From the IMG/VR virus record IMGVR_UViG_3300020154_000003, positions 302,039 to 366,038 of that record: DNA of 64,000 bases. One strand, given 5' to 3'. The notes beneath the pieces are model-generated. The model worked only from the letters and a program-made list of their open reading frames with translations, did no database searches and was not told where the DNA came from. Every line of letters begins with the position of its first letter. The first letter of the stretch is position 1. The position numbers and the translations under genes were made by a program. Positions 3,359 through 63,999 of the stretch are shown piece by piece.

Positions 3359-3441
3359 TTTTCATATTTATTACAATCAGATGATTTTATAATAAATACT
3401 AAAAATTTAGAAAAAAGAATAAAAATTTATAAGATTTTCTC

Positions 3442-5813: not shown

Positions 5814-5832
5814 ATATTTTTTAAATAAATAC

Positions 5833-6774
5833 TTACTCCTTTAATTTTAACGCTGCGGCTGTTTCACATATTTCATTGACATAGAAGCTTGAGCAGTACA
5901 TGTTACTTACATACGACAAATCTTCATCGAATGGCGATTTTGCAATGAAATCACCTTTATAAAACATATGTGATCTATCATTTTCGGTAACACCTGCATT
6001 ATGATAGATATTATTACTTTCTAGTTCAGATACTGGCGAAGTTGCCCAACAAAACGACAATTCATCAATTATTTCCGTATCCAGACCCATCAACCAAATA
6101 TTCCACAACAATGCCCACATATCAGCAGTCCACGATTGTATTGGTGATTGAACTGCGTTCTTCTCAGAGGTTACCAACATTGTTTTATATAAAATGTTAC
6201 AATCTCGTTCCACTTTATTCCAGAAATCGTATGATAAATTAAAATTTGAAGTAAATAAGTACTGAGCACCACCGGACATTTCTTGGTTGTTGATTACATG
6301 TGTTGGATTGATTCCCACTACTCGACACATTTTTTCTAATAACCCTAAACCCTTTTCTCTAATATATGCTGCACCGATATACGACCTAGTATCGGACACG
6401 TATATTTTTCTTTTGTCAATATAATCTTTCAAGTTTGGTATTTTTGTAAATATTACATCGCAGTCCATATATAAAACTGCTTTATTTTGTAATATGTCTG
6501 CGTATTCTCCAGTATATAATTGTTTAATTATATGAGGTCTAAGACTAGGTAAATATAATCTTTGAGACAAGTCCCTCGTATCTGGGAGAAAAATTACTCT
6601 AGCATCAGTAGTTTCTTTAAACTCAATTGCTTTTTCATTTATCCCAATTTTAGGATTATAACCAAATAGTATAATAGTTTTATCTTCAATTCCAAATTTT
6701 TTGAAATTGTGCATTTGAACTTGTAGTTGCCAAACGTAGTAATCTGTATCTGGTTGAGCAGTTAAAAACTTCAT
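5833..6774 (-). CDS. GT-A glycosyltransferase resembling protein O-glycosyltransferases (HPAT GT95 / SERGT GT96)
   Basis: DxD motif YMDCDVIF; N-terminal YYVWQxxxxMHNFKK and C-terminal WTADMWA recall plant HPAT/SERGT motifs. Confidence 0.65.
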   Translation of the reverse strand: MKFLTAQPDTDYYVWQLQVQMHNFKKFGIEDKTIILFGYNPKIGINEKAIEFKETTDARVIFLPDTRDLSQRLYLPSLRPHIIKQLYTGEYADILQNKAVLYMDCDVIFTKIPNLKDYIDKRKIYVSDTRSYIGAAYIREKGLGLLEKMCRVVGINPTHVINNQEMSGGAQYLFTSNFNLSYDFWNKVERDCNILYKTMLVTSEKNAVQSPIQSWTADMWALLWNIWLMGLDTEIIDELSFCWATSPVSELESNNIYHNAGVTENDRSHMFYKGDFIAKSPFDEDLSYVSNMYCSSFYVNEICETAAALKLKE

Positions 6775-8202: not shown

Positions 8203-11200
8203 TTATGATGTTATTGGGGTTCTCTCCCCTGAAAAGTTAATAAATAATTGTCCTGTTGGTTGATCGATAAATGTCCATGTCGTACCACCATCAGTAGTTC
8301 TAAAATATCCGTTATTGGACGTGCTCGGATCAATAATTAAATGACCAGATGCAACACCAATATTTTCATCAATGAAATAAAGTGCTGAATATGCACGACC
8401 AAGAGTATTAACTGCAGTCCACGTAGTACCACCATCTGTTGATCTAAGTATTTTTGCATCGTTTCCAGTATAACTCATTATCACGAAAACAATATTATCA
8501 TCAATAGCCCATACTTGATTAACACCAAATCCATCAGCAGGTAGATTAGCACTAATATCAGTCCACGTATCGCCACCATCAATTGATTTGTATAATACGT
8601 TATCTGTACTCGTGCTATGTGTAAAGTATGCAACATTATTAGATGGTGCGAACGAAAGAGCCTTAGGTTGGCCAACAGGAGTCGCCAATATTTTAGTCCA
8701 TGTTGTACCACCATTTGTGGTTTTATAAACGCCTTGATAACCACTATTAAACCCGTGATACCCTATTGCGTAACCAATATTTAAATCTTTAAAGTGTATA
8801 CCATTTACAGCCTGACTAACTGCCCCAATAACTAACTCAGATCGAGACCAAGTTACACCGCCATCTGTTGATTTTAAAAATCCGTTAGCCCCAACAGCAC
8901 ATAACACATTACTATTTAATGCTAACACAGCCTTAATACCACCACCATTATATCCTGCAGAATTTAATGCAGGTCTTCTACTAGTCCATGTAGCACCTCC
9001 ATCATTTGTTGTAATTATGTGAGGGAATGTTGCGTTTGAAGTAGATATGGTTGCACCCATAATACCAACTTGCCCAACAAAACTAACATGACTATATCCA
9101 ACACTATCAATTGTGGTTTGTGTGTTGACTGAAGTGAAGTTAAGTCCACTATCAATTGATCTATATGCTGATTCGTTAGTTGTGTACCCAAAATAATCTG
9201 CTGCCCAAAATGATGGTATAGAACCAGCAGGTATTGTTATGGCTTCATTAACTGAGAACGGTAAAGGAGCGTCAATTATAGCACCGCTATCTGATGCTGT
9301 TATGGTGTTAATGTTAAGTGTTAGTGAAGTAGATGCGTCATCACTACTATTAGGACTGTGTGCGCTCATAGTTATCTGAATTGTCAGAGAATCGCTGCTT
9401 AACATAGTGAAGGATGATGAATTGTTTTCAGTACCATCAGTCACTTCGTTCGAATATATCACACTGCCATTCTTTATAATTTCCACTAAATTGCTTGCAT
9501 CACTATCACCTTCTACCGTTGCAATTTGCCCCAAATCAAACCCTAACGTAAATATTGTTCCGTTAGATAAACTTGGGGTTATAGCAATTTCATATTCTAA
9601 GAATATGTCTGCATTACGATTTCCAGTAGTTGCACCGGAAGAGTATACTCTTTCAATTTCAGTCATAAAGAATTCATATTCATTAATAACATATTCTTGT
9701 TGAACACAAATAATATCATCCCACGCAAATGAAAATGTAGTATCCTGTACTCTTCTAACAAATTCACTACCGTCATTACCTAAATGGTTTAATGACTGGT
9801 CAAAACTAACTCCCCTTCTATATGGAAATTTTTGCTTAGTAAATGCTGTGTTTCTAACCAGTACACCACCTTTCTTTAGAATTATTGTGGCACTTAATAA
9901 TTGATCTATGAATCTATGGAAAAAGCTATTGAACTTATTGATAAATGGATAAACGTTAGTAAACGTATATCCATTACTACGTACTGTTGGATGATTGCTT
10001 CGCTTTAAATATTCTTCATACAACTTCTGAACTGTTGGATATAACCCACCTTCATGATCTGTCAGAGTTTTTCTATTTTTAACGTTAATTAATCGTCTAT
10101 TAATAAGTTCAAGGTATTCCAAGAAACTAATCTCGGACAAGTTAGGAAACTCAAAGTCGCCAAAATTAATACCAGTATCAGTACTACCATCAGCAGTAAT
10201 GTAGAAGACATTTATTAAATATCCTATGTTCAAAGCACTAGTATTGAATAAAATTTGTTTCCTATTGGATGAATTCAAAGTAAAATCTTTACCATTTTGA
10301 AGGGTAAGACCATTAATCACAACTTTAATAGCATCCACGTTAGGTGGCTCATAGTCCATAACATAGATGTATTTGTTGATACCACTATTGTAGAAAAATT
10401 TAGAGGTTGAAAAACTATCAATTCTATGACTTTCAGATTTTTTAAGTATCGGATCATTACCAGACGATTTGATGTAACTGATAACCACAACAGGATTTGC
10501 AATCAGGTAATTTTTCAAATCATTATTAACCACAATAATTTCACCAGAATTGATCACATAATCACCAGTATATAGCGAGTTACCTTTGGTTAATGTCATT
10601 CCATTTACCACTAATTGTACCTCACCCAATGGGTCTTCCAATAATGGGATAGACAATCCATCAGGATTGGCAGTAATTTTTGTAACCACGTAATCTACTT
10701 GATTATAAGTACCACCAGTAGATTTGTCGTTGAGATATGTTAATGTAATAACGTCTTTATGTCCATTCGTATAACTTTGTGCAGTCCCTCCTATCAAGAT
10801 AGCCTCTTTACTATCTAAAGGATTTATGTAATAATCAGCACTAGGATCAGTTGATCCTGAACCCTTGGTTAAAGTAAGACCATTAAAACTAACCTGTATA
10901 TCACCTTGAGGAACTTCTGGAATAGTAAATGAAGATGCAGAGGCACCATAAGTGAATGGTATATTAATGTAAAGATAAGGTTTAGTTACACCGCTAGTTG
11001 TAATTGGAAAATTGTGTTCAAGGTTGTAATTCCAAACATCAAATTCAATACCTCTTGAAATATCAAGAGTTATGTCAACTTCTTTAGTATTCAACACTAA
11101 ATTACTATCATTTTGATAATAGTTTGGTGTCGTGTAATGTCTTCTTTCAGTAGTACCTGATTGTACCCACGACTTTTTGTTGTCAACTTTTCTATTCAAT

Positions 11201-19882: not shown

Positions 19883-19974
19883 ATTTATAATAATTTATAG
19901 TTTATTATAAATACTGGAGTTTTTCGGAAAATTTATTGTTTTTTAGTAAAAACTGTAAAAAACTGTAATTTTTT

Positions 19975-21140: not shown

Positions 21141-21175
21141 CGTACCAATAAATACTGGATATTTTATAAATTTAG

Positions 21176-24100
21176 TTATTGAGGCTCCTGAGGAACTATT
21201 TGTCTCAATAAAATTTCCTTATTGTTTCTTTGCTTACCAGAATAAATATCGAAAAGAAGTTTCTTCAGAATTTCACCGATCTGCTGACCACTATAACCCA
21301 AGGCCAATAAATCATTTCCATTAACTTGCAGTTCTCGCAACGAGAACGGCATACCCATAGACCTCATCTCCTTGATACTGTCTTTTATCTTATCAGGAAT
21401 TATTTGGGAGTTGATCGCATCGGGATAAATCTTATACATGTTGAAGACGGTGATTTTGTTTTTAACTGCACTATCCGAATCGTCTTTAAATGCAAGTTCC
21501 AATGCTCTCATCTCATTGTATGTTGTAAGGTCACCTTTCAAGCTGTTCTTATAAAACTCAGCAGGGTTAGGTATGCCGTACTTTGTCAATTGGTAAATAA
21601 ATTCACCCATAGTTTTAACGTTGTTGAATTCAGCAACGTTGATCTCAGTGTCAACACTAAATATCTGTTCATACAAACCAGTTTCTTTCAATAATTGAGC
21701 ACCAACTGTTGGCTTACCTTTCTTCACAATCTTATCGAATTCAATCAATATTCTCTCAGGAGAAATTTCTCTTATTTTAAAGGCATTTTGTTGGATTGCC
21801 TTTAATGTTTGAGGTTCTATTTTGAAATCAAATCTGGATGCAAATTGAACAGCACGTAGCATTCTCAAAGGGTCTTCCGAAAAGGCTTTCGGATTAACCA
21901 TTCTGATGAGTTTATCTTTTATGTCCTGACTTCCACCGTATGGGTCAATCATTTGTCCATGAGAATCCTTAGCGATTGCATTTATGGTGAAATCCCTTCG
22001 TTCTAAGTCTTTTTCAATGGGTAACGTGTGATCTGACGTAACTTCAAATCCCTGATACCCACCCTGACCCGTGGCCCTTTCGGTTCTTGGTACTGCAATA
22101 TCCAACTCCCCTGTTTGAGGGGTCGTAAATTTGATGATTCCAAACGATTTACCGACATTATCCACGCGACCGTACTTGGCTAAGATTTTCTCAATATCTT
22201 CCAATGGAACGCCTGTAATGAGCAAATCCAAGTCTTTAGATGGTTTGTTCAACATCCCATCACGAACAGCACCACCCACGGAGTAGATTTTACCGCCTGC
22301 GAGTTCAATATCGTTTTTGAAGGGTAGCATGTCTAAATTTGCAATATTTTCGTTGATTTTGCCCTTTTTTGGCTTTAAAACGGTTTTTTTCTTGTCTTTC
22401 GTTGAAAAAACTAGCTTTTCAGACTGCAATTTAATGTTTTTCTTGAACTTCTTACCATATTTCTTACCAGTACCCTTTTTAACATAAGAAATAGTCATGT
22501 GAGGATGATAATCCTTAAATCTATTGGTGTAAGGGAGTTCTTTTAACGCCTTATTTAAGTTTTTCAAGGTTTGAGTAGGGACAACATCAAATTTAACTAC
22601 GTCAAAGTCAGGAGTTTCGAAGTGAGACACCTCTTTTAACTCTATTTCGATGGGTTTTGAGATGTCGATGATGCTTTCCACAATAGCCCTTACCTGATTC
22701 GCGTCAACTCCATCATGGAAGCCATAAAGAATGGTTATATGCGGGTCTTTTTCAATACCAAAGGTTGGTTTGTCATAAATATCGTCTTTTTCGATCATGG
22801 ACGTAATTTCATCCCAATTCGAAACCTTTATTTCTAACATCAACACACCGAATTCTACCTTCTCCTTTCTTTCGGCTTCGGCAAGCATTTCCTTAATTAA
22901 GGGTTCTGCCATGTCCTGTACCTCACCGTCTTGATCCATAAACTCGTCCCAATATCCGCTCATGTCTTGTATTTCAACCATCTCAGGCTGAAATTTAACA
23001 TCAGGTATTTTCTTCCACGTATATCCACCACCAGTTTCATAGTTATATGGCGAAATATCAACATGCATCAATATTCTGTTAGCTGTATCATAAACATATA
23101 TCGAAGTGTGACATTCGTATTCACTGTATCTTGTAAAACACCCATAATCACTATTACTAGTGACTACATCACACATTTTATCTGCAATATCATCGCATAT
23201 ACCACCAGAACCATACATTTCATCATATCCTTCATGATCTTGTTCCCATTCATTATATACTTCCTGAGCAACTGTAGCAAATTGTGTCTTCAAGGATTCC
23301 AATTTAGACTTCAATGCTAAAACAGGAGAATTTTCATTCAGAGATTCATACATCTCATCTGTATCGTCAACTATTTTAATTGATGATGGTTCGAATACAA
23401 TATAGTTGGTTGCATCAGGATTGGTTTTATCACTCATCATATTCCCCACGTATCCAGCTTTACTTAGAAACATTGATGCTGCTTTATTACTACCTAGCAC
23501 GGCAGCTAACCATTCATATACTTGTTTATTTGTGATGTCATAACGATATGATTCATCGTAAAAGTCACTTTGAAACTGTTCAATATCAATATCACTCAAA
23601 CCTAAATTTCTGCCGCGACCAAGTATGTATGAAGCTAAATGATCATCGATGGTTTCATCAAAATTCAAATACCTTCCGTCTCTCAATTGAACGTTCAATA
23701 TCTTATCACCATAGATGGATGCCACTTGAGGGTCATTAGTGAAGTAAAAACCCCATCCTCCCAATTCTCTACCGTCTGATGAACCTATTTTTTTTAATGA
23801 GAAAGCATTAAATTTACTTTTACTGGAAGTACCGTGGTAAGCATCGATTTCACTTACTCTACTTAATTCTTCCTTAATTGTTTGTGTTACTATCGCATTG
23901 ATGTCGCCTTGGTTGCAGGGAGTACTGGTGCCATCACCATTACCGTTTATTTGACACTTCTTCTTGATACCAACAGCTTTCGCATCAGGCATGTACGTCA
24001 TTACTCTTTCAAGAATAGCATTTTCAAGCTTGAGCAATTCAACCTGATCCATCTCTTTATGTGCTGAATATCCAAGATCATAATATGCAAGTACACCCTT

Positions 24101-25393
24101 TCTAAAACCAAAATTCTCTTCAGTAAAATCCGCGCTTCTCACACCATGATCCATGAGTTCTTTAATAACCGCAAGCATTAGTCCAACATTGCGTTTCAAT
24201 TGAGGATTTTGAATCGTTGCCGATTTCTTAACTATTTCATTAAATGCAGGTCTGTCAGATTTTTTTATCATATCTGCAATTTGACTCCATCCAGCAGGTG
24301 ATAAATCCATAAAACCCATGAAGTCAGCGATTATGTCAATTACTCTTTCAGGATCAACGTCAAGTTTTTCACGAAGAATTATATAAATTTTGTCGTTCGG
24401 TTCGTTTAATCTATATGACCCATAAAAACGTCCAATATGTTTTGTGTTCTTACCAACCAATCTTGATGCTTCAATTGCTTCACCTCTATCTGAGGTAATC
24501 TTCAAGATTTTATTACCTCCAATATCAAACGCATAACCTTGAGTTCCCTTACCTAAATTAGCAACAATGCTATGACCTAATTTATTTGCTACTTTAGTGG
24601 CGAAATCATTGATATTAGAATTCTGCCTCATGAGATGTCTTTCTATATCTTCTACCGCCTCATCAACAACTACATTCTCCAATGCCAGTACATCCGCATT
24701 AGGTTTGTCCTTATCACCAGTCATCCCATAATCAAAAAATCCTATCTGACCATTCTTCTTATATCCTAAATTATTGGCACTCAAATCCAAACTTTTCATG
24801 TTATTGGATTTAAGTTCTTTCACAATATTTAAAAGTGAATTGTAGAAATGTTTTTCATTGGGATAATCATTAAGTAAATGCTCAATGTCTGCAGCAAAAT
24901 GTTCATACATTTGAGGTTTACTGGTAGCCATGTCGATAAAGGCTACAGCAAAAAATTTATGGCCAAATCTACTTTGCAATAAATCATCTAAATTTTCAAA
25001 AAGTGTATCAAATTTGGTGGGATCAACCGTTAGTTTTTCACAGATAATGAGGAATACTTTTTTGTTAACACCCCTTTTGTCGATTTCGTAAACTTGATAT
25101 ACATCTGCTAGAAGTTTGTTCCGTTTGCCTTTGATTTTTAAAGCTTCAATAGCTTCAGAGGGATCAATAGTCAATTTATAAACCTTGTCACCAGAAATGT
25201 ATGCGATACCATTGTATCCTTCGCCAGCATAAGTTGGGAGTTTTAAGATTCCTAATTTACCTACCACATCCTTTAATATTTCATCAGCTACTTTTCTATC
25301 CAAAATAGTTTCATTGATAATATTGGAAGCAATGAAGTCTTCAGCAATTACTCGTATAAATTCTCTTCTAATAATTTCTGGCTGTTTACTCAT
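21176..25393 (-). CDS. Polyvalent protein: kinase-like x2, ADP-ribosyltransferase-like, unknown domain, 2H phosphoesterase (Acb1/gp57B-like), CCA-adding nucleotidyltransferase
   Basis: Kinase 1 GEGYNG/VYK/DLSANN/FDYG; kinase 2 GKGTQG/LKI/DFTEEN/YDLG; AYHGT..GFYFT; HITI and HMTI; VGGAVRD..DLD, RRDFTINA, DPLRMLRA. Confidence 0.85.
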   Translation of the reverse strand: MSKQPEIIRREFIRVIAEDFIASNIINETILDRKVADEILKDVVGKLGILKLPTYAGEGYNGIAYISGDKVYKLTIDPSEAIEALKIKGKRNKLLADVYQVYEIDKRGVNKKVFLIICEKLTVDPTKFDTLFENLDDLLQSRFGHKFFAVAFIDMATSKPQMYEHFAADIEHLLNDYPNEKHFYNSLLNIVKELKSNNMKSLDLSANNLGYKKNGQIGFFDYGMTGDKDKPNADVLALENVVVDEAVEDIERHLMRQNSNINDFATKVANKLGHSIVANLGKGTQGYAFDIGGNKILKITSDRGEAIEASRLVGKNTKHIGRFYGSYRLNEPNDKIYIILREKLDVDPERVIDIIADFMGFMDLSPAGWSQIADMIKKSDRPAFNEIVKKSATIQNPQLKRNVGLMLAVIKELMDHGVRSADFTEENFGFRKGVLAYYDLGYSAHKEMDQVELLKLENAILERVMTYMPDAKAVGIKKKCQINGNGDGTSTPCNQGDINAIVTQTIKEELSRVSEIDAYHGTSSKSKFNAFSLKKIGSSDGRELGGWGFYFTNDPQVASIYGDKILNVQLRDGRYLNFDETIDDHLASYILGRGRNLGLSDIDIEQFQSDFYDESYRYDITNKQVYEWLAAVLGSNKAASMFLSKAGYVGNMMSDKTNPDATNYIVFEPSSIKIVDDTDEMYESLNENSPVLALKSKLESLKTQFATVAQEVYNEWEQDHEGYDEMYGSGGICDDIADKMCDVVTSNSDYGCFTRYSEYECHTSIYVYDTANRILMHVDISPYNYETGGGYTWKKIPDVKFQPEMVEIQDMSGYWDEFMDQDGEVQDMAEPLIKEMLAEAERKEKVEFGVLMLEIKVSNWDEITSMIEKDDIYDKPTFGIEKDPHITILYGFHDGVDANQVRAIVESIIDISKPIEIELKEVSHFETPDFDVVKFDVVPTQTLKNLNKALKELPYTNRFKDYHPHMTISYVKKGTGKKYGKKFKKNIKLQSEKLVFSTKDKKKTVLKPKKGKINENIANLDMLPFKNDIELAGGKIYSVGGAVRDGMLNKPSKDLDLLITGVPLEDIEKILAKYGRVDNVGKSFGIIKFTTPQTGELDIAVPRTERATGQGGYQGFEVTSDHTLPIEKDLERRDFTINAIAKDSHGQMIDPYGGSQDIKDKLIRMVNPKAFSEDPLRMLRAVQFASRFDFKIEPQTLKAIQQNAFKIREISPERILIEFDKIVKKGKPTVGAQLLKETGLYEQIFSVDTEINVAEFNNVKTMGEFIYQLTKYGIPNPAEFYKNSLKGDLTTYNEMRALELAFKDDSDSAVKNKITVFNMYKIYPDAINSQIIPDKIKDSIKEMRSMGMPFSLRELQVNGNDLLALGYSGQQIGEILKKLLFDIYSGKQRNNKEILLRQIVPQEPQ

Positions 25394-25400: not shown

Positions 25401-25426
25401 GAAAACCCACGATTTTGTGGGCTTTC
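25401..25426 (-). terminator. Hairpin plus T-run just upstream of the polyprotein ATG
   Basis: CCCAC/GTGGG stem with AAA/TTT extension. Confidence 0.5.
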
Positions 25427-25452
25427 ATATAATAAATACTTTAAAAAGTCGA

Positions 25453-26184
25453 TTATTTCAGGTTTTGTTTCCTCTTTTGAATGTCAAGAATCGTTTCAAC
25501 CACAACTTTCTTAAATTTACCTGAGTCGATAAATTCGTTAATAACATTTTCGATTTTCTCTCTAGTATACATCTCAGTGATAACGTTTCTGAAGGTTTCT
25601 TCAACCAATTTATCAAAGGTGTTACCACCCAAAACATCAATCATAGTCTTACGAATCTGCTCATTCAATAAAGCGGGGTTAACTGCACCATAATGCTGCA
25701 CTTCATTCAAAGGCTGTTGTGGAGCACCAGCACCAACATACTGGCTTGTAGAATACTCGGCTAATTGTTGTGACAATCCAGCATTCGGATTGCTTGTAGG
25801 CTTTTTAGTGATTAATTCCTTGGCTCTAGCCATTTGTTCCTCAAAAAAAGTATCTCTCTTATCAACCATTTGACTTTGTTGTACTGGTTGAGTATACTCA
25901 TTTACTGCTTGTCTACTTGCAGACTGTGTTGGAGGATTATAGTGTGATTTAGCAACAGCTACTGGCACTCCGTGATTGGCTTCAGTACTTTCTGATACTG
26001 CTCTGATTGCCTGAACCGCAGGAGTAGGAACACCACTGTTTACTGAATTAAGTAATTCAACTATGAATCTCTTGCTATCACTTTTACGAATCCCACTACC
26101 AGTACCAAGAGTTTCTTCCTTGATTATTGATTGATTTCTTCTTTCTTCAATCTCTTTCTTAATATTATCTAAATTAAAATTCAT
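25453..26184 (-). CDS. Hypothetical protein, possible internal head protein
   Basis: 243 aa, Q/P-rich linker, several IxE/LNE motifs. Confidence 0.6.
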   Translation of the reverse strand: MNFNLDNIKKEIEERRNQSIIKEETLGTGSGIRKSDSKRFIVELLNSVNSGVPTPAVQAIRAVSESTEANHGVPVAVAKSHYNPPTQSASRQAVNEYTQPVQQSQMVDKRDTFFEEQMARAKELITKKPTSNPNAGLSQQLAEYSTSQYVGAGAPQQPLNEVQHYGAVNPALLNEQIRKTMIDVLGGNTFDKLVEETFRNVITEMYTREKIENVINEFIDSGKFKKVVVETILDIQKRKQNLK

Positions 26185-26848
26185 TTTGATTATCTTGTTT
26201 TTTTATGGTATTATCAAACTCACGTTTCTTTTGATCAAACCAGCTTTTTGAAGCATTATCATTGTCCACACCCTTGTTTCTATTGAAGAATGAAGATTTT
26301 TTAAATCTATCCAACTGTGTCTGAAACCAATTTTTATCGTTAGTCATCCCTTGATAAGTGTCAGGCTGGTTTATTGATTTATCACCTGAAACTTGCTGTG
26401 GTTCTTCACTGCTTGGCTCTGCAGCCAATATTATTTGGGTCATTTGACTATCCTTCGGATTATAATTTGGCCTGTTTGTGCGCATATAATTCGCATCAGT
26501 CTCAAATTTTTTCAATGTTTTAGCCATTGAAGTAATCCCATCCAATCTGAATAATCTCCAGCCCGGAATCTCATCATTTGGCCTCTTTGGTGCGTTCCCT
26601 GTATCGGTAGCACCTGCTTGCTGCCATGCTCTTAAAACTAAATTCCCTGCTTTAGATACACCTAAAACATACGGTTCAATTGTACGATAACCTCTATTCA
26701 CGGTTTCATCGCCTGCATAGTAAATAAAGACAACATCTTTATTGTTGATTGCATTGGCGACAGTATTCCTATCGACCCATTCATTCAAACTTCTAAGTTT
26801 GTCGATTTGGGCCTTAAGATCGTCCTTTCCGAGAATAGGTTTATCCAT
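26174..26848 (-). CDS. Stand-alone WYL domain protein
   Basis: FIYY...YRTIEPYVLG...LRAWQ...WRLFRLDGI. Confidence 0.75.
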   Translation of the reverse strand: MDKPILGKDDLKAQIDKLRSLNEWVDRNTVANAINNKDVVFIYYAGDETVNRGYRTIEPYVLGVSKAGNLVLRAWQQAGATDTGNAPKRPNDEIPGWRLFRLDGITSMAKTLKKFETDANYMRTNRPNYNPKDSQMTQIILAAEPSSEEPQQVSGDKSINQPDTYQGMTNDKNWFQTQLDRFKKSSFFNRNKGVDNDNASKSWFDQKKREFDNTIKKQDNQNEF

Positions 26849-27108: not shown

Positions 27109-27155
27109 TTTGTTTCTGTTAACTAAATTATTAAGTTATTTATCAATAAATACTC

Positions 27156-27989
27156 TTATTGATTTAATGTATCATCATTATCTACTGACCATACAATTAA
27201 TTTTTGCTTTGCAAGAGCGATAAAATCATCCAAATGAGGTGTTTTATCTAAATCTCTTATCTGATCGGTTGAAAACCATGCGTATTCAGTATGCTCTTCG
27301 TTAATAACTACGGCAGGTTGACCCTCAACGGAGGTAACAAACACATATTCTACGCTATCTTCAGAAGTTCTAATCACAAAATCACCAATGAAATCAGTTA
27401 TTTGAAGACCAGCTTCTTCCCAAATTTCTCTTTTAGTCCCTTCCTCAGGAGTTTCGCCTGCTTCAATTTTACCACCAACTAACGCCCATTTATTAGGTTC
27501 CCAATGATCGTCTGGATTACGCTTTACAAGCAATACCTTTTCATCACCATCTCCACGACTAAAAATCACTGCCAAACCATTCTTTTGCAATCCTTCAAAC
27601 TCTTCAGTAATCCCCAAGTTAACAGCACCGCCTTGTGCATGTAGTGTTCTATTATCTAATTGAGGCATGAACATAACGTTAGTATTTTTTTTACTTGCCA
27701 CAAGGTTCCTTTCTGCACCTAATGTTCTTTCCACAAAATCCTTCATGTCCTTTCCACCTGCCAACTCATACTCATCTTTCTGAACGGCAGGATTAGCATA
27801 ATCGAAAAAGTTTTTCAATCTTTTAAGCATGGCATAAGTACAAATACCATTATTTACAATCCATTTTCCTCTTTTCGTACCGTTTGTAACTCCATTAACA
27901 GTTGCAAGCTTTGCACGAATCTTTTCAACGATATGTTGTGGTATTCTATATGGTCTTTCTTTGCTCTTATTATAGAGTTCTCTATTCAT
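27156..27989 (-). CDS. Nudix hydrolase with uncharacterised N-terminal domain
   Basis: Full Nudix box GGKIEAGETPEEGTKREIWEEAGL. Confidence 0.85.
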   Translation of the reverse strand: MNRELYNKSKERPYRIPQHIVEKIRAKLATVNGVTNGTKRGKWIVNNGICTYAMLKRLKNFFDYANPAVQKDEYELAGGKDMKDFVERTLGAERNLVASKKNTNVMFMPQLDNRTLHAQGGAVNLGITEEFEGLQKNGLAVIFSRGDGDEKVLLVKRNPDDHWEPNKWALVGGKIEAGETPEEGTKREIWEEAGLQITDFIGDFVIRTSEDSVEYVFVTSVEGQPAVVINEEHTEYAWFSTDQIRDLDKTPHLDDFIALAKQKLIVWSVDNDDTLNQ

Positions 27990-28531: not shown

Positions 28532-28555
28532 AGTTTTTTACTTATAAATACTAGA

Positions 28556-36171: not shown

Positions 36172-36207
36172 ATCACTTATTTTTTATAAATACTTATTTA
36201 TCAACTT

Positions 36208-40656: not shown

Positions 40657-43600
40657 TTAATTAGACTGCATATCAGGAGTGGTCACAACATCTAACCTAC
40701 CACCATTCATGCATATTGCAGTTATTATATCTTCTGAATGCGCTGGAGAACTACCATTTGTTGTTGGATTAGTAAGTACAGGAGTAGTTCCGAATGGGAA
40801 TCTATAACGACCACTAGCCCAAGTAAATGATTTGTTTGATGTATCCATTATAATCTTAAACATATACTGTTTACCAATTGTTTCACCAGTATAATTGAAC
40901 GATGTTACGTTACCAGTAACATTAAGTAAGAATATATCGGCAGTTGTAAGGTCTACTACAACATTTCCAGCAACACTACCGCTAAATACAACTAGAGTTG
41001 GTGTTATTTGACTGGTTATACCTGTCACATAATTCACATCAACCAACGAATGTTTGGTGAAACCAGTTGCATAATTACCTTTATATTCAATACCTGCTTT
41101 TATCGCTCTACCATCAGTAAATGTAGTACCTGTTTTAGTGATAATGAATCTAGCAAGTTCATCATCATCATTGTTTCTAAAAGTAACATCAAATCCGTAT
41201 GGTGAGAACAACACATCATTAGCAGTGCCATCATCTTCAATGATTTGTTGAAGTACTTGAGGTTGCTCATCTGGTTTATCGTATTGATTTGCATTACTTA
41301 CGTCTAAATGTGCATACCTACCGAAGTTATTCCCGTTGGCAGTCGCTTCAATACCTGAACTACGAACTTTAAATTCATTATATTTATCTGTCAAATCATC
41401 AAAGCTGATGGTCGTTCCATTAAAGTGTTTTACTTCAAAAGAAGTTGAACCCATCGTAAAACCATCATCATATTCAGTTGTTACCGAAAGAGCAGCATTA
41501 AAAGCACTGTTACCGAACGTAACTGTACTGCTATGACTCAAACTAGTTGAGTCTAACGAAGTATCACCACTCAATGAACCACCCAATATTATCACACCAT
41601 TATTGTCTGTCAAACCATTACCAACAAGAATGCTAGTACTACCACCAGTTAACGTGGAAGTTATGCCAGTTACATAAGCAACATCAGGTATTGATCTGGC
41701 AGTATATAATTCATGTAGATTTTCATTATACTCAATGACAGCATTTCGCATCACTAATTTACCAGCATCAAGTAATCCATTTTCGTCTAATCGGTAAAGT
41801 CCTGTATTTAATGTTTTGGGATCGTGGTATGTATATCCGTTTAATAATATCTTATTTTCAGGCAGTAATGAGACAAACCCACCAGTTAGACTTATACTAC
41901 CACCACCGTATCCTAATTTGAAATCATGGTTAATAGTACCATCGATATTCAAGTTTATTAAATTACCTCCTTGTCCATTTTCATCTGATAGATTATTACC
42001 ATTATATCTATTAAATGCTCCCGATGCTAAAATAGTACCGTTTGGCAACCAACATACTTTACTTACCTCAGTAGATGGTATATGAAATGTATATGTAAAA
42101 CCAGTACCCGGATCAAAACTACCCACATTAGTTCCACCACTAGTTATAAGCTTTAATCTAGGATTATTGAATCTGGCAATAATAACTTCACCAGTCTCTT
42201 GATTAACATCAAACCACATACCTCTTTCACCGTCAGAAAGAACATTAAAACCAGCAACTCTCGAACCGTCTGAATTTAATTTTGTAAAACCCGGAGAAAA
42301 CACACCATCATAATAATTATACGCACCGCAGGCATATATTGATCCACCAGACAATTGAAATACTCTCTCAACCCAACTATTGGCTGTTCCACCTGCGCCA
42401 CCCCATCTAAATCCACTACCATAAGTAAATCCTGTATCAACACCCCCATTCTCATTTAGACGAACAATACTCCATGCACTAGTCCCATCAAATTCTGTGA
42501 AAGTACCACCTACAAGAATCTTATCATCATCCTGTACGAAGATTGAATAAACAGAACCGTTAAAACCAGTACCGCCTGAGAAAGTAGCGTCATAACTACC
42601 ATCTGAATTCAATCTAGCTATTCTATTTACCGTATTTCCATCAATTTGAGTAAAATCTCCACCAATAATTATCTTACCATCTTGTTGCACATCGACAGCC
42701 CTTATTGTGTTATTAATGGAGGCAGGGTTAAAATCACCACTATTAGTACCATTTTCAATTAAGACTGTTATATATTTTTTAGTTAAATCGGTATTCCATG
42801 ATGTGAAATTACCTACAACAATCACTTTATATGCTCCATCACTCGGAAATTGTGGATCAATAACTTTAGTTTGAGAAACATAGCCAGAATTTCCACCTAG
42901 ACCAATATTAAATCCACTTTCAACATCGAAAAATAACCCCATTCCGTAATTTTGTAGCTGAAGTCTACTACTAGCGATATTAATTTCAGTATGTCCTTCA
43001 AGGGTTCCTCCGAGTCCAAAGTTTCCTGTACCACCTGTGTTCACTGTTCTAACCAATCCATTACTAGCGGTTTCACCTTGAGATATTACCCAAGCCTTAT
43101 CAACTAATGATCTATCAACATAATTTTCTGAATAATCAGCATCATAGATTGCAGCACTTCCACCGATAATGATTTGATCAATCACTGGAATAGTCCCAAT
43201 ATTTACTTCTCCATTACTTTTGAATCTAAAAACACCGGGATTGTTTAAATTAACATCTGTTGCGTATGTACCAGCATAAATAAAACCATCTGAATTTTCT
43301 ATAATAGTATACGAGTAAATCTGTGAATCCAGAGAGTCTCCAAAATTTAACTCATGTATACCATCAGCAGATAATTTACACAAATACTTAGTAGCCGTAC
43401 CGTTATAATTTTGAAAACTACCTGCAACAAGTATTTTATCACCTTCGGTGAGTTTCATTGCATTTATATCATTATCAAAACCAGTACCACTAGAGAAAGT
43501 AGTGTCATATGTGCCATCCTCATTAAGTCTATGAATACGACCTGTATGTCCTTCAAAAGTTGAGAACTCACCTCCTATGATCAATTTTCCTGATGACTGT

Positions 43601-44409
43601 TGTAAAATACCTCTAAAATAGCCTCCAGATGATCCTGTAACTATGTTTGCACTAAAAGTTGTATCTACGCTACCATCACTATTCAATCTAGCGATACCTA
43701 ATGCAGGTGTCGAATTAACTGCTTCAAAATAACCTCCAACAACAATTTTACCATCTTCTTGTATGCAAATAGCCGACACTTCACTATCAAAACCACTTCC
43801 AAGGTTGGTCATAAATGAGGTATCTTGAGTACCATCTGAATTCAGCTTAACAAAATGGCTACTAGAATTACCGTTAAAATCATCAAACCATCCACCAACA
43901 AATATTTCTCCGCTTTCAGACTTAGCTATACAGTTAGCATAATTACCCACACCACATGCAGTGCCAATAGCAGTGTTAAAATCAGTATCTAAAGTACCAT
44001 CAGCATTTAATCTAGTGAACCCATTTGTTGTTGTTCCATTAAATTCACTAAAGTAACCACCTATTAGTATTTTATCATCGTTTTGCATTGCAACACACAA
44101 ACCGTCACTGTCAAATCCAGTTCCCGTATTTGTTGTAAATGTGGCATCAAGTTCACCAGTCGCACTTACTTTTTGTATTCCGTAACCAGTCTCAACGCCA
44201 TTCCATGATGAATCTTCACTAGCCATTATTACACTACCATCCGCTTGAAGACCAAAACCATACGCAGTACTAAAATTAAGACCAGTACCGGGGACAAAGA
44301 ATGTCTCGCCTCTAAATGTAATTGTTGATGCTGATTTACCTATTGTTAGGTCATTTTCATGACCGTGATAAAATTTACTGTTATCTAGTAATTGTTTTGT
44401 TATTAACAT
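40657..44409 (-). CDS. Tail fibre/appendage protein with two delta-60-type beta-propellers
   Basis: Repeats of QxDGKI(L/V)(V/I)GGxF...RLNxDGxxDxxF; FTKHSLVDVNYVTGITS connector. Confidence 0.75.
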   Translation of the reverse strand: MLITKQLLDNSKFYHGHENDLTIGKSASTITFRGETFFVPGTGLNFSTAYGFGLQADGSVIMASEDSSWNGVETGYGIQKVSATGELDATFTTNTGTGFDSDGLCVAMQNDDKILIGGYFSEFNGTTTNGFTRLNADGTLDTDFNTAIGTACGVGNYANCIAKSESGEIFVGGWFDDFNGNSSSHFVKLNSDGTQDTSFMTNLGSGFDSEVSAICIQEDGKIVVGGYFEAVNSTPALGIARLNSDGSVDTTFSANIVTGSSGGYFRGILQQSSGKLIIGGEFSTFEGHTGRIHRLNEDGTYDTTFSSGTGFDNDINAMKLTEGDKILVAGSFQNYNGTATKYLCKLSADGIHELNFGDSLDSQIYSYTIIENSDGFIYAGTYATDVNLNNPGVFRFKSNGEVNIGTIPVIDQIIIGGSAAIYDADYSENYVDRSLVDKAWVISQGETASNGLVRTVNTGGTGNFGLGGTLEGHTEINIASSRLQLQNYGMGLFFDVESGFNIGLGGNSGYVSQTKVIDPQFPSDGAYKVIVVGNFTSWNTDLTKKYITVLIENGTNSGDFNPASINNTIRAVDVQQDGKIIIGGDFTQIDGNTVNRIARLNSDGSYDATFSGGTGFNGSVYSIFVQDDDKILVGGTFTEFDGTSAWSIVRLNENGGVDTGFTYGSGFRWGGAGGTANSWVERVFQLSGGSIYACGAYNYYDGVFSPGFTKLNSDGSRVAGFNVLSDGERGMWFDVNQETGEVIIARFNNPRLKLITSGGTNVGSFDPGTGFTYTFHIPSTEVSKVCWLPNGTILASGAFNRYNGNNLSDENGQGGNLINLNIDGTINHDFKLGYGGGSISLTGGFVSLLPENKILLNGYTYHDPKTLNTGLYRLDENGLLDAGKLVMRNAVIEYNENLHELYTARSIPDVAYVTGITSTLTGGSTSILVGNGLTDNNGVIILGGSLSGDTSLDSTSLSHSSTVTFGNSAFNAALSVTTEYDDGFTMGSTSFEVKHFNGTTISFDDLTDKYNEFKVRSSGIEATANGNNFGRYAHLDVSNANQYDKPDEQPQVLQQIIEDDGTANDVLFSPYGFDVTFRNNDDDELARFIITKTGTTFTDGRAIKAGIEYKGNYATGFTKHSLVDVNYVTGITSQITPTLVVFSGSVAGNVVVDLTTADIFLLNVTGNVTSFNYTGETIGKQYMFKIIMDTSNKSFTWASGRYRFPFGTTPVLTNPTTNGSSPAHSEDIITAICMNGGRLDVVTTPDMQSN

Positions 44410-47400
44410 TTTTTTATTTTATATAAATACTTAAATTATTATCCTAATATGGTGCCGCCCATCCAATTTATACCGTTATACACTAACATAATTGACGTAT
44501 AATTTGCGTTAATTATCGCTGTTGAACTTCCATTAATTAAATACCCATTACCATCAACAGTTATATTATTATCTAACGCACCACCTATTGCATCGCAAAT
44601 ATAAATCTGCTGTTTAAAAGTAGGCGATGGCGGTAAGTAAATAACTCCTGCGGTATCCCCAAAATAGTGAATGAAATGAGATGACGTTGACGCTGTAAAG
44701 GATGAGCCAGTTACAATCTCCAAACCAACTACATTTACTGCAATCCCTGATGTTATGCCAGTTACGTAGTTAACATCCACCAATGAATGTTTCGTAAAAC
44801 CTGACGATAGATCAGTAACATAACGGAACTTCTGTGTCGATAATAATTCAGGATGTACAACAAAATATTCTTCAAAATCAGAATAATTGCGCTTAAATAT
44901 TGGATTTTCCTGTACTCCACTATTGATATACATTAGAGTATCAAATACAAAAACCATATTATTAGGGTTGTTATCTGAACCTGTATGTTGATCAATATAA
45001 TTACCATTCAAATCTACCCTAACCATTTGAGATTTAGATGACATGAATATATGATAGTCTTCATTTACGAATACATTACTATATGTACCAATACTTGGTA
45101 CTTGAGCAACGTTCGTATTGAATTCTTCATCGAATACTCCTGTCGCATCAACAACCATAAGGCCAGTATTCACCGATGAACTTCCATATGTTGAAAATGA
45201 ACCTGATAGTAAAAATCTATCAGTACTATCCAATTTTATAATTGAAGAAACTTGTCCATCAAATATTTCAGGAATAAATGTTTCACTTATTGTCCCATCT
45301 GTATTTAAAGCAACTATATAAGGAGTGCTTAACGTATTTCCACTATACTCAGTAAAAGCCCCAACAACTATAAGAGTATCATCATTTAATACCGCAAAAT
45401 CATATGGAGTGTCATTAAATCCAGCACCAGTATCAAAAGTATTATCTAAAGTACCATCTGTGTTTACTCTTCTTATATAAGTCACACCACTTACGGATTC
45501 AGTTATTCTTATGTAAAGTTTACCATCACTCAAACCTAACACTTTACCCACATTATGGATAGATTCACCACTTAAATAAAACGTAAAACCAGTATCAACA
45601 GTACCATCATGTAATAATTTAACAAGACAAGTACATTGGAAGCTATTAAAACTGTTAAATACACCATACACATAAATGTTTTCATCGTCATCAACAAAAA
45701 TACCTGAAATATTATTCGATGGGCCTGAACCAATATTGCTTGAGAAATTTTCATTTATAACTCCATCACCACTTAATAATGCTATACCACTTGAATTAAT
45801 ATCGTTAACGTCAGTAAATGCACCTGAGATCAAAAGATCACCTGTTGAGGGTATTCTTGCCATCCTATTGATACTTGCATTGACAGAAATATAATTGAAC
45901 TGGTTTAGTTTTTCATATGATGTTGAAATAGTCTTTGACGTTTCAGAATAATCACGGAAATTTAAATGGAAACCATCATTAACTTTATCTAAAGTTAACG
46001 TAACTACATCACCAGAAATGGCTGTTTGACCTGTCAATTCACCACCCAAAACCACCGTGTCAAGAGCACGTTTAACGCCATTATCTGCCAGATTAAGTAA
46101 GTTGCTCGTTAAACCAGTTACATAGTTAACATCGGCAATACTATGTTTTGTAAATCCTGACGAATAATCAGAATTATAGTTCATTTTATCATTTAGAGTA
46201 ATATTTTCTAAAGGAAAATCTGCTTCAAGACCAGTATCTGAAAGTAATGCCAAGTTAATACACGAATTTCCTTGATATGTCGTAAATGCCCCTCCAACTA
46301 GATATTGAACTGGTGAAGAATCCACTTTTTCAATTACTTTTGGCCCTCCACTAAAACCAAACGCAGCATTGAAGCCAGTACCAATATTAAATGTATTATC
46401 ACGAGTACCATTACTATTCAAACGAACAATTCTATTTGTTGTTGTTCCTGATAAAATAGTAAATCTACCAACTGCAATAATTTTAGTACTATCTACTAAC
46501 ACATCATGTACTGTATGAATAACACTGCTACTAAAACCAGCATCCATATCAAAGGTATTGTCAACACTACCATCAGTATTTAAGCGAATTAATTTATTAT
46601 AACCAGTAACCCCGCTATATGAAGAAAAACTACCACCCACCAAAATTTTATCATCTGGTTGAATTTCAATCACAAATACTGTGCTATTAAAACCAGCACC
46701 AGCATCAAATGTATTATCAACACTACCATCAGTATTTAAGCGAATTATTCTATTGAATCCAGTAACACCACTGTATGAAGTAAAATTACCACCAACCAAA
46801 ATTTTATCATCAGATTGAATCTTAATTGTATTCACTGTACCATTAAAACCAACACCGACATCAAATGTGTCATCAATACTCCCATCATTATTTAATCTAA
46901 CAATACGATTAGATGTGACTCCATCATAACTAGTAAAATCACCACCAACCAGAACTTTACTGCCGACAACTAATTCATCTACTTCAATAATATTCACATC
47001 ACCATTAAAACCATCACCAACAATGAAGGTATTATCGAATGCAAGACTAGAATCGTTTAATCTTAGTATTCTATTTTGCGTTGAGGCATTAAATGTTGTT
47101 GAGAATCCACCACCAACATAAAGACCATCAGTAGTCCTCGCCAATGTTTTTATATTTGATATATTTACCGATCTTTCAAGATTATATTGTGTATCATACT
47201 TTAAAAGTGTTATGTCGTTTCCAACATAGATGGCCGCACCGTATGATAATATTGCTAATACTTCACCGCTACTATAAAATTTACTATTTAATTGAATTCC
47301 CTTACTATATGAGTTCCAAAGATTGAATTGGGATGACTTCTGTGTAAAAATACCATCACTAGCTATAGTTGTCGATTCGGTTAACTCCCCACCAATTTTA

Positions 47401-52943: not shown

Positions 52944-52970
52944 TTATTTTTTTGTATATCTATCTTAATA

Positions 52971-59953: not shown

Positions 59954-59968
59954 TGTACCTTTGAAAAG

Positions 59969-60040
59969 TAGGGATTAAGGGATTTGCACCCATATCTGTG
60001 TTCGCAATGAACACCGTTCTAAAAGTTAAACTAAGCCCCT
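59969..60040 (-). ncRNA. Degenerate 72-nt tRNA-like RNA unit 1
   Basis: Cloverleaf AGGGGCT-TA-GTTT/GAAC-G-GTGTT CATTGCG AACAC-AGAT-ATGGG TGCAAAT CCCTT-AATCCCT-A; lacks D-loop GG, TTC, U33 and CCA. Confidence 0.7.
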
Positions 60041-63747: not shown

Positions 63748-63999
63748 CTATATATCAGTCGGTTGTAAATTCACTGTTTGCCCAATTATTGGTTGCTCAA
63801 CTACTTCGTCTTTCTTTTTGATGGTCTTTTCTCGCTCAATGTAATCGTCCTTGGCTTTATCAAGTGCTTTATTCAAAAATTCACTTTTCATCTGCCTATC
63901 CAAATCTGAATCTAAAGAACCAGTAGTATTTTTAGTGATTGTTGCGTTAGGCTTCGAATGTTCGATACACCTAATCTCCAATGTATCATTATTAAGAAT
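63748..63999 (-). CDS. 3' fragment of a gene entering from beyond the right edge
   Basis: Frame stays open from the edge (ILNNDTLEIRC...); track start is an internal TTG. Confidence 0.55.
   Translation of the reverse strand: MLNNDTLEIRCIEHSKPNATITKNTTGSLDSDLDRQMKSEFLNKALDKAKDDYIEREKTIKKKDEVVEQPIIGQTVNLQPTDI

Follow-up and report, generated by a model that had tools for sequence, protein, structure and literature searches.

A predicted seven-module enzyme polyprotein with conserved head-protease-type cleavage motifs at its module junctions in a soil jumbo phage

In this study, we analysed a 64,000-nt stretch of a 366-kb jumbo-phage genome (the window) and found that a single open reading frame encodes a chain of 1405 residues (P0001) with seven modules: two kinase-like domains, a short conserved cassette, an ADP-ribosyltransferase, a domain of unknown function, a 2H phosphoesterase and a tRNA CCA-adding enzyme. 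Each module junction carries the short hydrophobic-x-Glu motif that T4-type head proteases cut. The explanation we favour, as somewhat more likely than not, is that the protein is loaded into the phage head, cut into separate enzymes and injected with the DNA, although packaging and cleavage are inferred from sequence and predicted structure alone. The features of the gene and the evidence for each of them are collected in Table 1.

Table 1. Features of the P0001 gene and its upstream region (window coordinates)
Position (strand)	Feature	Residues and border motif	Supporting evidence
21176..25393 (-)	Whole ORF, P0001, polyvalent precursor with seven modules	1-1405	Translation; Pfam and PHROG searches; two AlphaFold models
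25432..25439 (-)	Promoter-like motif GTATTTAT (extended form A-GTATTTAT-W), candidate late promoter		46 nt upstream of the ATG; 12 matches in the window against 1.3 expected
25405..25422 (-)	GC-rich hairpin (GCCCAC..GTGGGT followed by a T run) between the promoter-like motif and the start codon, function putative		Hairpin of like sequence at the same place in a 371-kb relative
25310..25393 (-)	N-terminal leader, predicted propeptide and possible capsid-targeting peptide	1-28, ending I26-N-E28 (also I16-A-E18)	pLDDT<50 at 17-27; motif at this column in 91% of 116 homolog segments; other leader types in homologs also end in [ILMV]xE
24659..25309 (-)	Kinase-like domain 1	29-245, border site V243-D-E245	Foldseek matches to protein-kinase and aminoglycoside-phosphotransferase folds, E about 3e-4; Gly-loop, Lys, D..N and D-x-G motifs visible; motif column conserved in 83%
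24008..24658 (-)	Kinase-like domain 2 (paralog of domain 1)	246-462, ending I460-L-E462	BLAST matches to homologs; AlphaFold model; Foldseek; sequence motifs
23870..24007 (-)	Conserved 46-aa two-Cys cassette (R..KKKC..G.G..TS..CNQGD..), predicted disordered	463-508, conserved x-E|R site before it and I506-K-E508 after it	Family alignment; pLDDT 30-44; downstream motif in 90% of 105 segments; found in only 193 clusters of 1.84 billion; flanking motifs seen again in 126 new proteins
23333..23869 (-)	Short spacer plus ART-PolyVal ADP-ribosyltransferase domain	Spacer 509-515 (V513-S-E515); domain 516-687, ending L685-N-E687	Pfam PF18760, 1.2e-9; pLDDT<50 at 677-687; V513-S-E515 kept in 10 of 11; domain-end motif kept in 4/5 to 6/10 of the few homologs
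22877..23332 (-)	Domain of unknown function (helices plus a beta sheet, Cys/His-rich)	688-839, ending L837-A-E839	Confidently folded in both models; no Pfam, PHROG or protein-atlas match; motif at 837-839 in 95% of 64 homologs
22349..22876 (-)	2H phosphoesterase (LigT/Acb1-like) domain, with the two H-x-T/S motifs of the duplicated fold, H885-I-T and H965-M-T	840-1015, ending I1013-N-E1015	Pfam PF13563 1.8e-11 (44.8 bits) and PF23474 2.6e-4; pLDDT<50 at 1010-1017; motif in 97% of 118 homolog segments
21179..22348 (-)	Class II CCA-adding enzyme (tRNA nucleotidyltransferase), with GGAVRD at 1040, DLD at 1054, RRDF at 1132 and EDPLR at 1173	1016-1405	Pfam PF01743, PF12627, PF13735; phrog_2244 2e-69; head domain with the GGxVRD, DxD, RRD and EDxxR motifs of the class, plus an RNA-binding body

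The initial annotation had proposed that (I/L)-x-E motifs fall at every domain junction of this protein. To test this observation, we defined the junctions independently of the motif, using the low-confidence (pLDDT<50) segments of two AlphaFold models at residues 17-27, 240-243, 459-513, 677-687, 805-830/839-845 and 1010-1017, which agree with the ends of BLAST matches to homologs. The observation was confirmed. Seven motif-bearing strings, at residues 25, 236, 454, 505, 683, 832 and 1012, lie at the seven module junctions. However, two of the stretches that had been named, LALEN and LKLEN, are not themselves (I/L)-x-E, since they read A-L-E and K-L-E. The same strings do contain V243-D-E245 and I460-L-E462, so that six of seven junctions carry a motif with strict I/L and all seven do with I/L/V. 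Another named site, I833-K-E835, is not conserved (0 of 51), and the conserved site at that junction is L837-A-E839.

We then examined whether the motifs are enriched in linkers over the in-domain background, a test that had been set beforehand. [IL]xE occurs 23 times in P0001 against about 17 expected from composition, which is not a significant excess. 7 of 23 [IL]xE (p=0.04) and 12 of 37 [ILMV]xE (p=0.005) lie in or next to the 14.8% of positions that count as linker, while the control tripeptides ([ILMV]xD, xK, xN, [AGST]xE, [KR]xE) show no enrichment. Thus, the enrichment in this protein alone is modest. The whole proteome carries 12.4 [IL]xE per 1000 aa, so most in-domain copies are background.

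The decisive evidence came from conservation across the family. More than 200 relatives with shuffled modules, from jumbo-phage contigs, keep [I/L/M/V]-x-E at each module border, whatever the neighbouring module is. Since family members are related, the percentages here and in Table 1 overstate the number of independent events. Without any alignment, 107 of 113 distinct homolog contexts carry [ILMV]xE 25-26 aa before GGxVRD, against a background of 3.1 per offset. One shared pattern was found at four unrelated borders: P3 is I/L/M/V in 98%; P2 is Asn in 45%, followed by Lys, Asp and Ser; and P1 is Glu in 94% and Asp in 1.7%. In T4, Asp at P1 blocks gp21 processing (PMC9026906). The phage's own preference appears to be [I/L/M/V]-(N>K,D,S)-E. 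In an unbiased test on about 2500 similarity breakpoints among 120 family proteins, the density of [ILMV]xE was 0.31-0.37 per 5 aa against a background of 0.12, and the xD and xK controls were flat. All conserved junction sites fall in or next to pLDDT<50 linkers, whereas the conserved in-domain copies (117, 340, 1207, 1216, 1262, 1352) lie in folded regions and have other P2 residues.

To determine whether the phage has a matching protease, we searched the genome and found a T4 gp21-type (Peptidase S77) prohead protease at genome positions 68995-69729, outside the window (PF03420, 78.7 bits against a cut-off of 27). Its catalytic His and Ser align with T4 gp21 and are invariant in 39 relatives. 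The protease has [IL]xE|[SA]K near its N-terminus and [ILV]xE about 15 aa before its C-terminus in 116 of 117 relatives. The capsid protein has M-I-N-E|S 18 aa before PVIRR in 120 of 120 relatives, corresponding to T4 gp23 L-T-E65|A. The scaffold-like protein carries 35 motifs in 497 aa, the densest in the proteome. The protease and the polyvalent homologs occur on the same large contigs.

The extended promoter-like motif lies 6-60 nt upstream of 46 genes. Every one of these with a recognisable function is a late-type gene: sheath, portal, large terminase, scaffold, protease, a lysozyme-domain protein, and gp25 in relatives. The motif precedes P0001 here and its homologs in 371-kb and 326-kb contigs, and DNA polymerase and helicase lack it. 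The label 'late' rests on about seven annotated genes, and the public sequencing runs, which come from soil metagenomes, gave no transcript ends or timing, because those labelled RNA are probably DNA and are kept only as contigs. The P0001 gene lies beside DNA polymerase, helicase and NUDIX genes and not in the head module, although its position between the polymerase block and the baseplate genes is conserved. This conserved position and the late-type promoter motif give only indirect support for packaging in the virion and delivery with the DNA.

Taken together, these data suggest that P0001 is a polyvalent precursor of host-takeover and tRNA-care enzymes made late in infection. In this view, the precursor would be co-assembled into the prohead core, and the S77 protease would cut it after the Glu of [I/L/M/V]-x-E in each disordered linker. 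The predicted products are the leader 1-28, the kinase-like domains 29-245 and 246-462, the 46-aa cassette 463-508, the ADP-ribosyltransferase 516-687, the unknown domain 688-839, the 2H phosphoesterase 840-1015 and the CCA-adding enzyme 1016-1405. The free enzymes would stay in the head and enter the next host with the DNA, where they would act before any phage gene is expressed, modifying host proteins, removing 2',3'-cyclic phosphate ends or cyclic-nucleotide signals, and rebuilding tRNA 3' ends. Our analysis establishes the domain identities, the motif positions, their conservation across the family, the presence of the protease and the matching sites in the capsid protein and the protease, while late timing, packaging, cleavage, ejection and the targets of each enzyme are inferred. 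The interpretation in the initial annotation, that one precursor is packaged and cut by the prohead protease into enzymes ejected with the DNA, is partly supported. No recognisable capsid-targeting sequence has been shown, and the leader and the Cys cassette are candidates only. The N-termini resemble the T4 capsid targeting sequence MKTYQEFIAE (PMC8442874), since P0001 starts M-S-K-Q..E-F-I-R-V-I-A-E and many relatives start M-T-Y-D-E-F, but this match is very short and is a lead only. A complex prediction for the protease plus the cassette, from their alignments, returned a score of 0.00, which is not evidence either way.

An alternative that we consider possible but unlikely is that the protein works uncut in the cytoplasm as one multi-enzyme for tRNA maturation and repair and for host modification, like fused RNA-repair enzymes, with the border motif as a linker or domain-capping feature unrelated to proteolysis. 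The phage has 54 tRNA genes, about 46 of them without an encoded CCA, which gives the CCA domain an ordinary cytoplasmic job that needs no packaging. The 2H and CCA domains act on the same substrate, a 2H + CCA + kinase set could work as one intact RNA-repair enzyme, relatives add tRNA-ligase CPD and GNAT modules, the neighbours are replication and nucleotide genes, and the protein has no recognised peptidase domain. But this view does not explain why six unrelated module types share one Glu-specific motif with the same P3 and P2 preferences, why the sites lie in disordered linkers and not packed against domains, or why the same motif marks the capsid-protein and protease maturation sites. It also leaves the 46-aa disordered cassette flanked by two sites unexplained.

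Less likely still, the precursor may be cut at these sites without being packaged, or only trimmed at its leader, by the S77 protease or another Glu-specific protease in the cytoplasm, so that processing would release enzymes in the producing cell. This reading rests on the same motif evidence, on the location of the gene outside the head module and on the lack of a demonstrated targeting signal. However, T4-type prohead proteases act inside the assembled prohead (PMC9026906), late expression of counter-defence enzymes makes little sense unless they are carried over to the next cell, and no other candidate protease was seen in a search that was not exhaustive. Chance placement of motifs in a proteome rich in I, L, E and N is very unlikely. 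The motif is common, its total in P0001 is not significantly above expectation and 16 of 23 [IL]xE copies lie inside domains, but position-specific conservation reaches 83-97% across more than 100 relatives with shuffled neighbours, against about 3% background. The family alignments do not come from a handful of near-identical genomes, as identities are 25-65%.

P0001 is a polyvalent protein in the sense of Iyer, Burroughs, Anand, de Souza and Aravind 2017 (PMC5512222), a class with two to fifteen distinct, mostly enzymatic, conflict-related domains in one polypeptide of a phage or conjugative element. It carries signature domains of the class: ART-PolyVal, a short kinase (a kinase-like fold from Foldseek), 2H phosphoesterase and Pol-beta-type nucleotidyltransferase, with PF18760, PF13563 and PF01743 above their cut-offs. 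Module shuffling between relatives is extreme. That paper predicted packaging, delivery with the DNA and proteolytic release of the domains, and assigned processing to a peptidase domain within the protein, either a zincin-like MPTase or, rarely, a C-terminal assemblin-like peptidase. Such a domain is frequent in the class but not obligatory. We found no peptidase family in P0001 at E<=0.1 in Pfam and none in PHROGs, with the domain at aa 688-839 unidentified. Instead, P0001 carries a conserved motif at every junction and appears to be processed in trans by the prohead protease. A CCA-adding enzyme as the constant module and the 46-aa Cys cassette were not found in that paper by searches for selected terms, short of its full text.

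The T4 head-internal proteins cut by gp21 (Alt, IPI-III) share with P0001 a gp21-type S77 protease in the same phage, a hydrophobic-x-Glu motif with strict Glu at P1, a short N-terminal leader ending in the motif, an ADP-ribosyltransferase among the cargo and a gene near baseplate genes, as alt is in T4. T4 Alt is packaged, trimmed by gp21 at both ends and injected (PMC9026906). T4 cargo proteins are single enzymes trimmed at their ends, whereas here seven modules would be separated by internal cuts, and the P2 preference for Asn is specific to this lineage. In the phiKZ-like giant phages (phiKZ gp175, SPN3US gp245), many proteins are packaged in a giant head and cut after Glu by a gp21 homolog, and propeptides contain several redundant sites (PMC10052503, PMC9026906). 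Those proteases prefer small residues at P3, with A-x-E in SPN3US (PMC10052503). The phiKZ motif is S/A/G-x-E. Almost all reported cuts remove N-terminal propeptides, and none is reported to split enzyme modules apart. The phage studied here has a T4-like head and is not related to them (its capsid protein is no more than 32% identical to that of any cultured phage). The polyproteins of RNA viruses, in which one translation product is cut at linker motifs by a viral protease into separate enzymes, are an analogy only, since here there is a dsDNA phage, one gene among about 550, a protease encoded elsewhere and linked to capsid assembly, and products that would be destined for delivery and not for replication complexes.

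If the favoured explanation is true, it shows how a phage can deliver a whole set of ready-made counter-defence and tRNA-care enzymes with its DNA from a single gene, with the head protease as the releasing enzyme and a three-residue linker code as the only requirement for adding a new module. This would explain the extreme module shuffling in this family, extend the T4 Alt/IP principle to a true polyprotein and replace the self-processing model in those polyvalent proteins that lack a peptidase. It would also give a simple sequence rule ([ILMV]-x-E in a disordered linker, conserved across relatives) for predicting injected proteins in uncultured T4-like jumbo phages, and suggest a natural design for loading several foreign proteins into phage heads. 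A more speculative reading, which we consider unlikely on present evidence, is that this clade has a general pack-and-cut system, in which any enzyme module can be added to the injected arsenal by inserting it between [I/L/M]-N-E linkers of one late precursor. The two-Cys cassette, present in nearly all family members whatever their enzymes, would then be the portable element that targets the precursor to the prohead core or presents it to the protease, after which it is discarded.

Megablast of the gene against cultured phages found no match, and tblastn found only the CCA domain, at no more than 42% identity and in no fused context, so no virion proteome could be borrowed. Likewise, tblastn of the capsid protein found no cultured relative above 32% identity over most of its length. 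A protein-atlas search with the unknown domain (aa 688-835) gave no usable hit, and Foldseek on the 860-aa model was dominated by kinase matches, so this domain stays unidentified. We also considered that the junction motif might be a recombination scar that eases module exchange. This seemed improbable as the main cause, because conservation is at the protein level, with P2 and the codons varying.

The window is the last 64 kb of a 366,038-bp virus record from a soil metagenome, with GC 36%, and the interval under study is exactly one minus-strand ORF. To determine the domains of its product, P0001, we searched Pfam and PHROGs, and identified an ART-PolyVal ADP-ribosyltransferase, a 2H/LigT/Acb1-like phosphoesterase with the motifs H885-I-T and H965-M-T, and a complete class II CCA-adding enzyme with the motifs GGAVRD, DLD, RRDF and EDPLR. 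No peptidase domain was found in the Pfam search. We then built two AlphaFold models on homolog alignments, covering residues 1-860 (mean pLDDT 79.8) and 688-1405 (mean pLDDT 83.4). These models added two paralogous kinase-like domains of about 215 aa, which showed Foldseek matches to protein kinases and aminoglycoside phosphotransferases (E about 3e-4) and carry Gly-loop, Lys, D..N and D-x-G motifs. They also added a folded domain of unknown kind and a 46-aa stretch, referred to here as the Cys cassette, that is strongly conserved yet predicted to be disordered. The coordinates of these and other features are listed in the table.

Coordinates of the polyvalent gene, its modules and other features of the phage and of two related contigs (L014, the 371-kb relative; L015, the 326-kb relative)
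Feature	Position	Strand	Size or remark
P0001 gene	window 21176-25393	minus	1405 aa
Cys cassette	P0001 residues 463-508		46 aa
ART-PolyVal domain	P0001 residues 519-677		Pfam/PHROGs
Folded domain of unknown kind	P0001 residues 688-830		predicted, AlphaFold models
2H/LigT/Acb1-like phosphoesterase	P0001 residues 859-993		Pfam/PHROGs
Class II CCA-adding enzyme	P0001 residues 1036-1397		Pfam/PHROGs
Peptidase_S77 (T4 gp21) homolog	genome 68995-69729		78.7 bits
Promoter-like motif GTATTTAT of P0001	window 25432-25439	minus	46 nt before the ATG
Promoter-like motif A-GTATTTAT-W	window 25431-25440, 21147-21156, 19906-19915, 27145-27154, 28543-28552, 36185-36194, 44422-44431, 5824-5833, 3391-3400	minus (all)
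GC-rich hairpin followed by a T run	window 25405-25422	minus
GC-rich hairpin followed by a T run	L014 about 9915-9940
Low-complexity Q/P/S-rich protein, gene just upstream of P0001	window 25453-26184	minus	243 aa
Neighbour with a leader ending L-N-E	window 26174-26848	minus	224 aa
NUDIX protein	window 27156-27989	minus	277 aa
DUF5122 beta-propeller giants	window 40657-44409 and 44439-48797	minus	1250 and 1452 aa
Two giants without a family match	window 48825-56525
tRNA genes	genome 89-126 kb (outside the window)
tRNA-Gln	window about 59968-60040
Repeated ends of the record	window about 63860-64000 and genome 1-140		roughly 130 bases
Protein with weak ArdC-N match	L015 15110-16708		532 aa
Start region of homolog P0028	L014 about 9945-10000

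The initial annotation had listed seven strings with (I/L)-x-E motifs in the linkers between domains, and proposed that a prohead protease cuts the protein there. The observation was confirmed, with minor corrections. All seven strings exist, and they fall at seven junctions that were defined independently by segments of pLDDT<50 (17-27, 240-243, 459-513, 677-687, 805-830/839-845 and 1010-1017) and by the ends of homolog matches. However, 'LALEN' and 'LKLEN' read A-L-E and K-L-E, and the triplets in those strings that conform to the motif are V243-D-E245 and I460-L-E462. In addition, one of the listed sites, I833-K-E835, is not conserved.

To test the enrichment in linkers over in-domain positions, as had been suggested beforehand, we compared the two within this protein, and found a modest signal. 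There are 23 [IL]xE triplets against about 17 expected. Seven of the 23 (p=0.04), and 12 of 37 [ILMV]xE (p=0.005), lie in or beside linkers that make up 14.8% of positions. Control tripeptides with D, K or N at the third place, or with other residues at the first place, showed no enrichment. The proteome as a whole has 12.4 [IL]xE per 1000 aa, so most in-domain copies are background.

To examine whether the junction triplets are conserved, we searched 5.8 billion proteins and found more than 200 relatives of 830-2400 aa, many on contigs of 320-375 kb. They share the CCA module and combine it with different sets and orders of other modules (kinase-like, ART, 2H, GNAT, tRNA-ligase CPD, ParB and unknown). 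Module alignments with flanks revealed a hydrophobic-x-Glu triplet at fixed positions at module borders, whatever lies on the other side. The triplet was found before kinase-like domains (I26-N-E28 column) in 91% of 116 segments, at the paralogous V243-D-E245 column in 83%, immediately before the invariant Arg that opens the Cys cassette, at the end of the cassette (I506-K-E508) in 90% of 105, before the ART domain in 10 of 11, before the 2H domain (L837-A-E839) in 95% of 64, and before the CCA domain (I1013-N-E1015) in 97% of 118. An anchor test that needs no alignment showed the triplet 25-26 residues before GGxVRD in 107 of 113 distinct contexts, against 3.1 per offset elsewhere.

The four best-sampled borders share one pattern, with I/L/M/V at P3 (98%), Asn at P2 (45%) followed by Lys, Asp and Ser, Glu at P1 (94%, with Asp 1.7%), and a small or acidic residue at P1'. 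An unbiased test on about 2500 similarity breakpoints among 120 family proteins showed a threefold peak of [ILMV]xE, and none for [ILMV]xD or [ILMV]xK. Some in-domain triplets (117, 340, 1207, 1216, 1262, 1352) are also conserved, but they lie in confidently folded regions and have other P2 residues. For homolog P0028, the called start is probably too far downstream. An in-frame upstream ATG adds M-P-K-Y-R-L-I-V-T-E-E-Y, the leader type seen in other family members, which also ends in a hydrophobic-x-Glu triplet.

The Cys cassette has the consensus R-K-x-S-Y-M-P-G-S-x-x-V-x-V-K-K-K-C-R-L-G-G-x-G-x-T-S-x-A-C-N-Q-G-D-I-N-N-L, and is better conserved than the enzymes around it (44-58% against about 30%). 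A role in targeting to the prohead or in presentation to the protease is only a guess, and a predicted fold of the protease plus the cassette gave no verdict. The cassette is always bracketed by two sites, and is confined to 193 clusters among 1.84 billion representatives.

The genome encodes a Peptidase_S77 (T4 gp21) homolog, located next to a scaffold-like protein and a gp23-type capsid protein. The His and Ser that align with T4 gp21 are invariant in 39 relatives. The capsid protein has M-I-N-E|S 18 residues before PVIRR in 120 of 120 relatives, the position corresponding to the T4 gp23 site L-T-E65|A in the T4 record. The protease relatives keep [IL]-x-E|[SA]-K near the N-terminus and [ILV]-x-E about 15 residues before the C-terminus in 116 of 117, which fits the terminal self-processing described for gp21 and gp245 (PMC9026906, PMC10052503). 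Co-expression with a recombinant protease was done previously for SPN3US gp245 and phiKZ gp175. The scaffold-like protein has 35 triplets in 497 aa, the highest density in the proteome. Thus, the protease of this lineage very probably has T4-like L/I-x-E specificity (PMC9026906) with a preference for Asn at P2, and the junction triplets of P0001 (I-N-E, L-N-E, I-N-E, I-K-E, L-A-E) match it. Protease genes were found on the same large contigs as polyvalent homologs (371,504, 362,603 and 182,834 bp).

The low-complexity protein encoded just upstream of P0001 has 13 [ILMV]xE triplets, four of them x-N-E, the fourth-highest density in the proteome. It looks like a scaffold or internal-protein type of protease substrate, and is syntenic in relatives (247 and 228 aa). 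The 224-aa neighbour has a 23-aa leader ending L-N-E, and the NUDIX protein carries a 135-aa N-terminal extension and lies in an operon behind the promoter-like motif described below. Both may be further packaged proteins.

We also found a strong phage-specific promoter-like motif, GTATTTAT (extended form A-GTATTTAT-W, then an A-rich stretch), which occurs 87 times in the genome. Fifty-two of these sites are intergenic and within 150 nt upstream of a gene on the same strand, although only 8% of the genome is non-coding, and the motif lies 6-60 nt upstream of 46 genes. In the window the 10-mer occurs 12 times against 1.3 expected. Every bearer with a recognisable function is a late-type (structural, packaging or lysis) gene, namely tail sheath, portal, large terminase, scaffold-like protein, protease and a lysozyme-domain protein, plus the gp25 baseplate gene in two related contigs. 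DNA polymerase, helicase and the small RNR subunit lack it. The motif precedes P0001 and its homologs in the 371-kb and 326-kb contigs, and is conserved upstream of the orthologous genes in two related contigs. Between the motif and the start codon of the polyvalent gene, a GC-rich hairpin followed by a T run was found in this phage and in the 371-kb relative, whereas in the 326-kb relative a hairpin comes before the motif instead. It could be a terminator of the upstream operon or a 5'-UTR element.

Gene order is conserved in those contigs: helicase, DNA polymerase, small ORF, NUDIX, three small ORFs, polyvalent gene, and a few kb further on the gp25/gp6-like baseplate genes. In L015, the gene after the polyvalent gene encodes a protein with a weak match to ArdC-N, an anti-restriction DNA-binding domain typical of proteins transferred with DNA, and the slot appears to be a variable island of counter-defence genes. 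The rest of the window is largely structural, with a baseplate wedge protein and giant beta-propeller fibre-like proteins. Two of the giants are made of 7 and 12 DUF5122 beta-propeller repeats and are probably fibres or receptor-binding proteins, and two further giants showed no family match at all.

Taken together, these data suggest that P0001 is made late, enters the prohead core, and is cut by the S77 protease after Glu 28, 245, 462, 508 (and/or 515), 687, 839 and 1015. In this view, each cut would lie just outside the first secondary-structure element of the next module in the models, so every enzyme would be released intact, and the pieces would remain in the head and enter the next cell with the DNA. 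We consider this explanation somewhat more likely than not. Our analysis establishes only the anatomy of the protein, the conservation of the triplets and the presence of the protease, and it supports the timing indirectly, while packaging, cleavage and ejection are inferred. The processing proposed in the initial annotation is therefore partly supported. The mechanism would extend the principle of T4 Alt and the internal proteins (PMC9026906), and fits the prediction that polyvalent proteins are packaged and processed (PMC5512222), but differs in that the releasing protease would act in trans and is the head-maturation enzyme.

Polyvalent proteins, gp21-type processing of packaged proteins, and phage CCA-adding enzymes were each described previously (PMC5512222, PMC9026906, PMC7824862). 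What is new here is the cassette and a putative trans-acting prohead-protease code conserved at every module junction of a large polyvalent family, and we found no description of either in the literature searched.

Other explanations appear less likely. P0001 could work uncut in the cytoplasm as a multi-enzyme, since the phage has 54 tRNA genes, about 46 of them without an encoded CCA, which gives the CCA module an ordinary job, and the 2H and CCA domains share a substrate. This reading, which we regard as unlikely, leaves both the cassette and the Glu-specific code shared by the junctions unexplained. Cleavage without packaging, or trimming of the leader only, seems less likely still, and chance is made untenable by the family data. 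Mixtures of these readings, and explanations not thought of, account for the remaining doubt.

The tRNA genes cover nearly all amino acids, and two have a CUA anticodon (amber-suppressor-like). The ORFs in the window read through normally under table 11, so there is no sign of recoding here. Finally, the last roughly 130 bases of the record repeat its first bases with one mismatch, suggesting a circularly permuted or terminally redundant genome that was assembled as linear.
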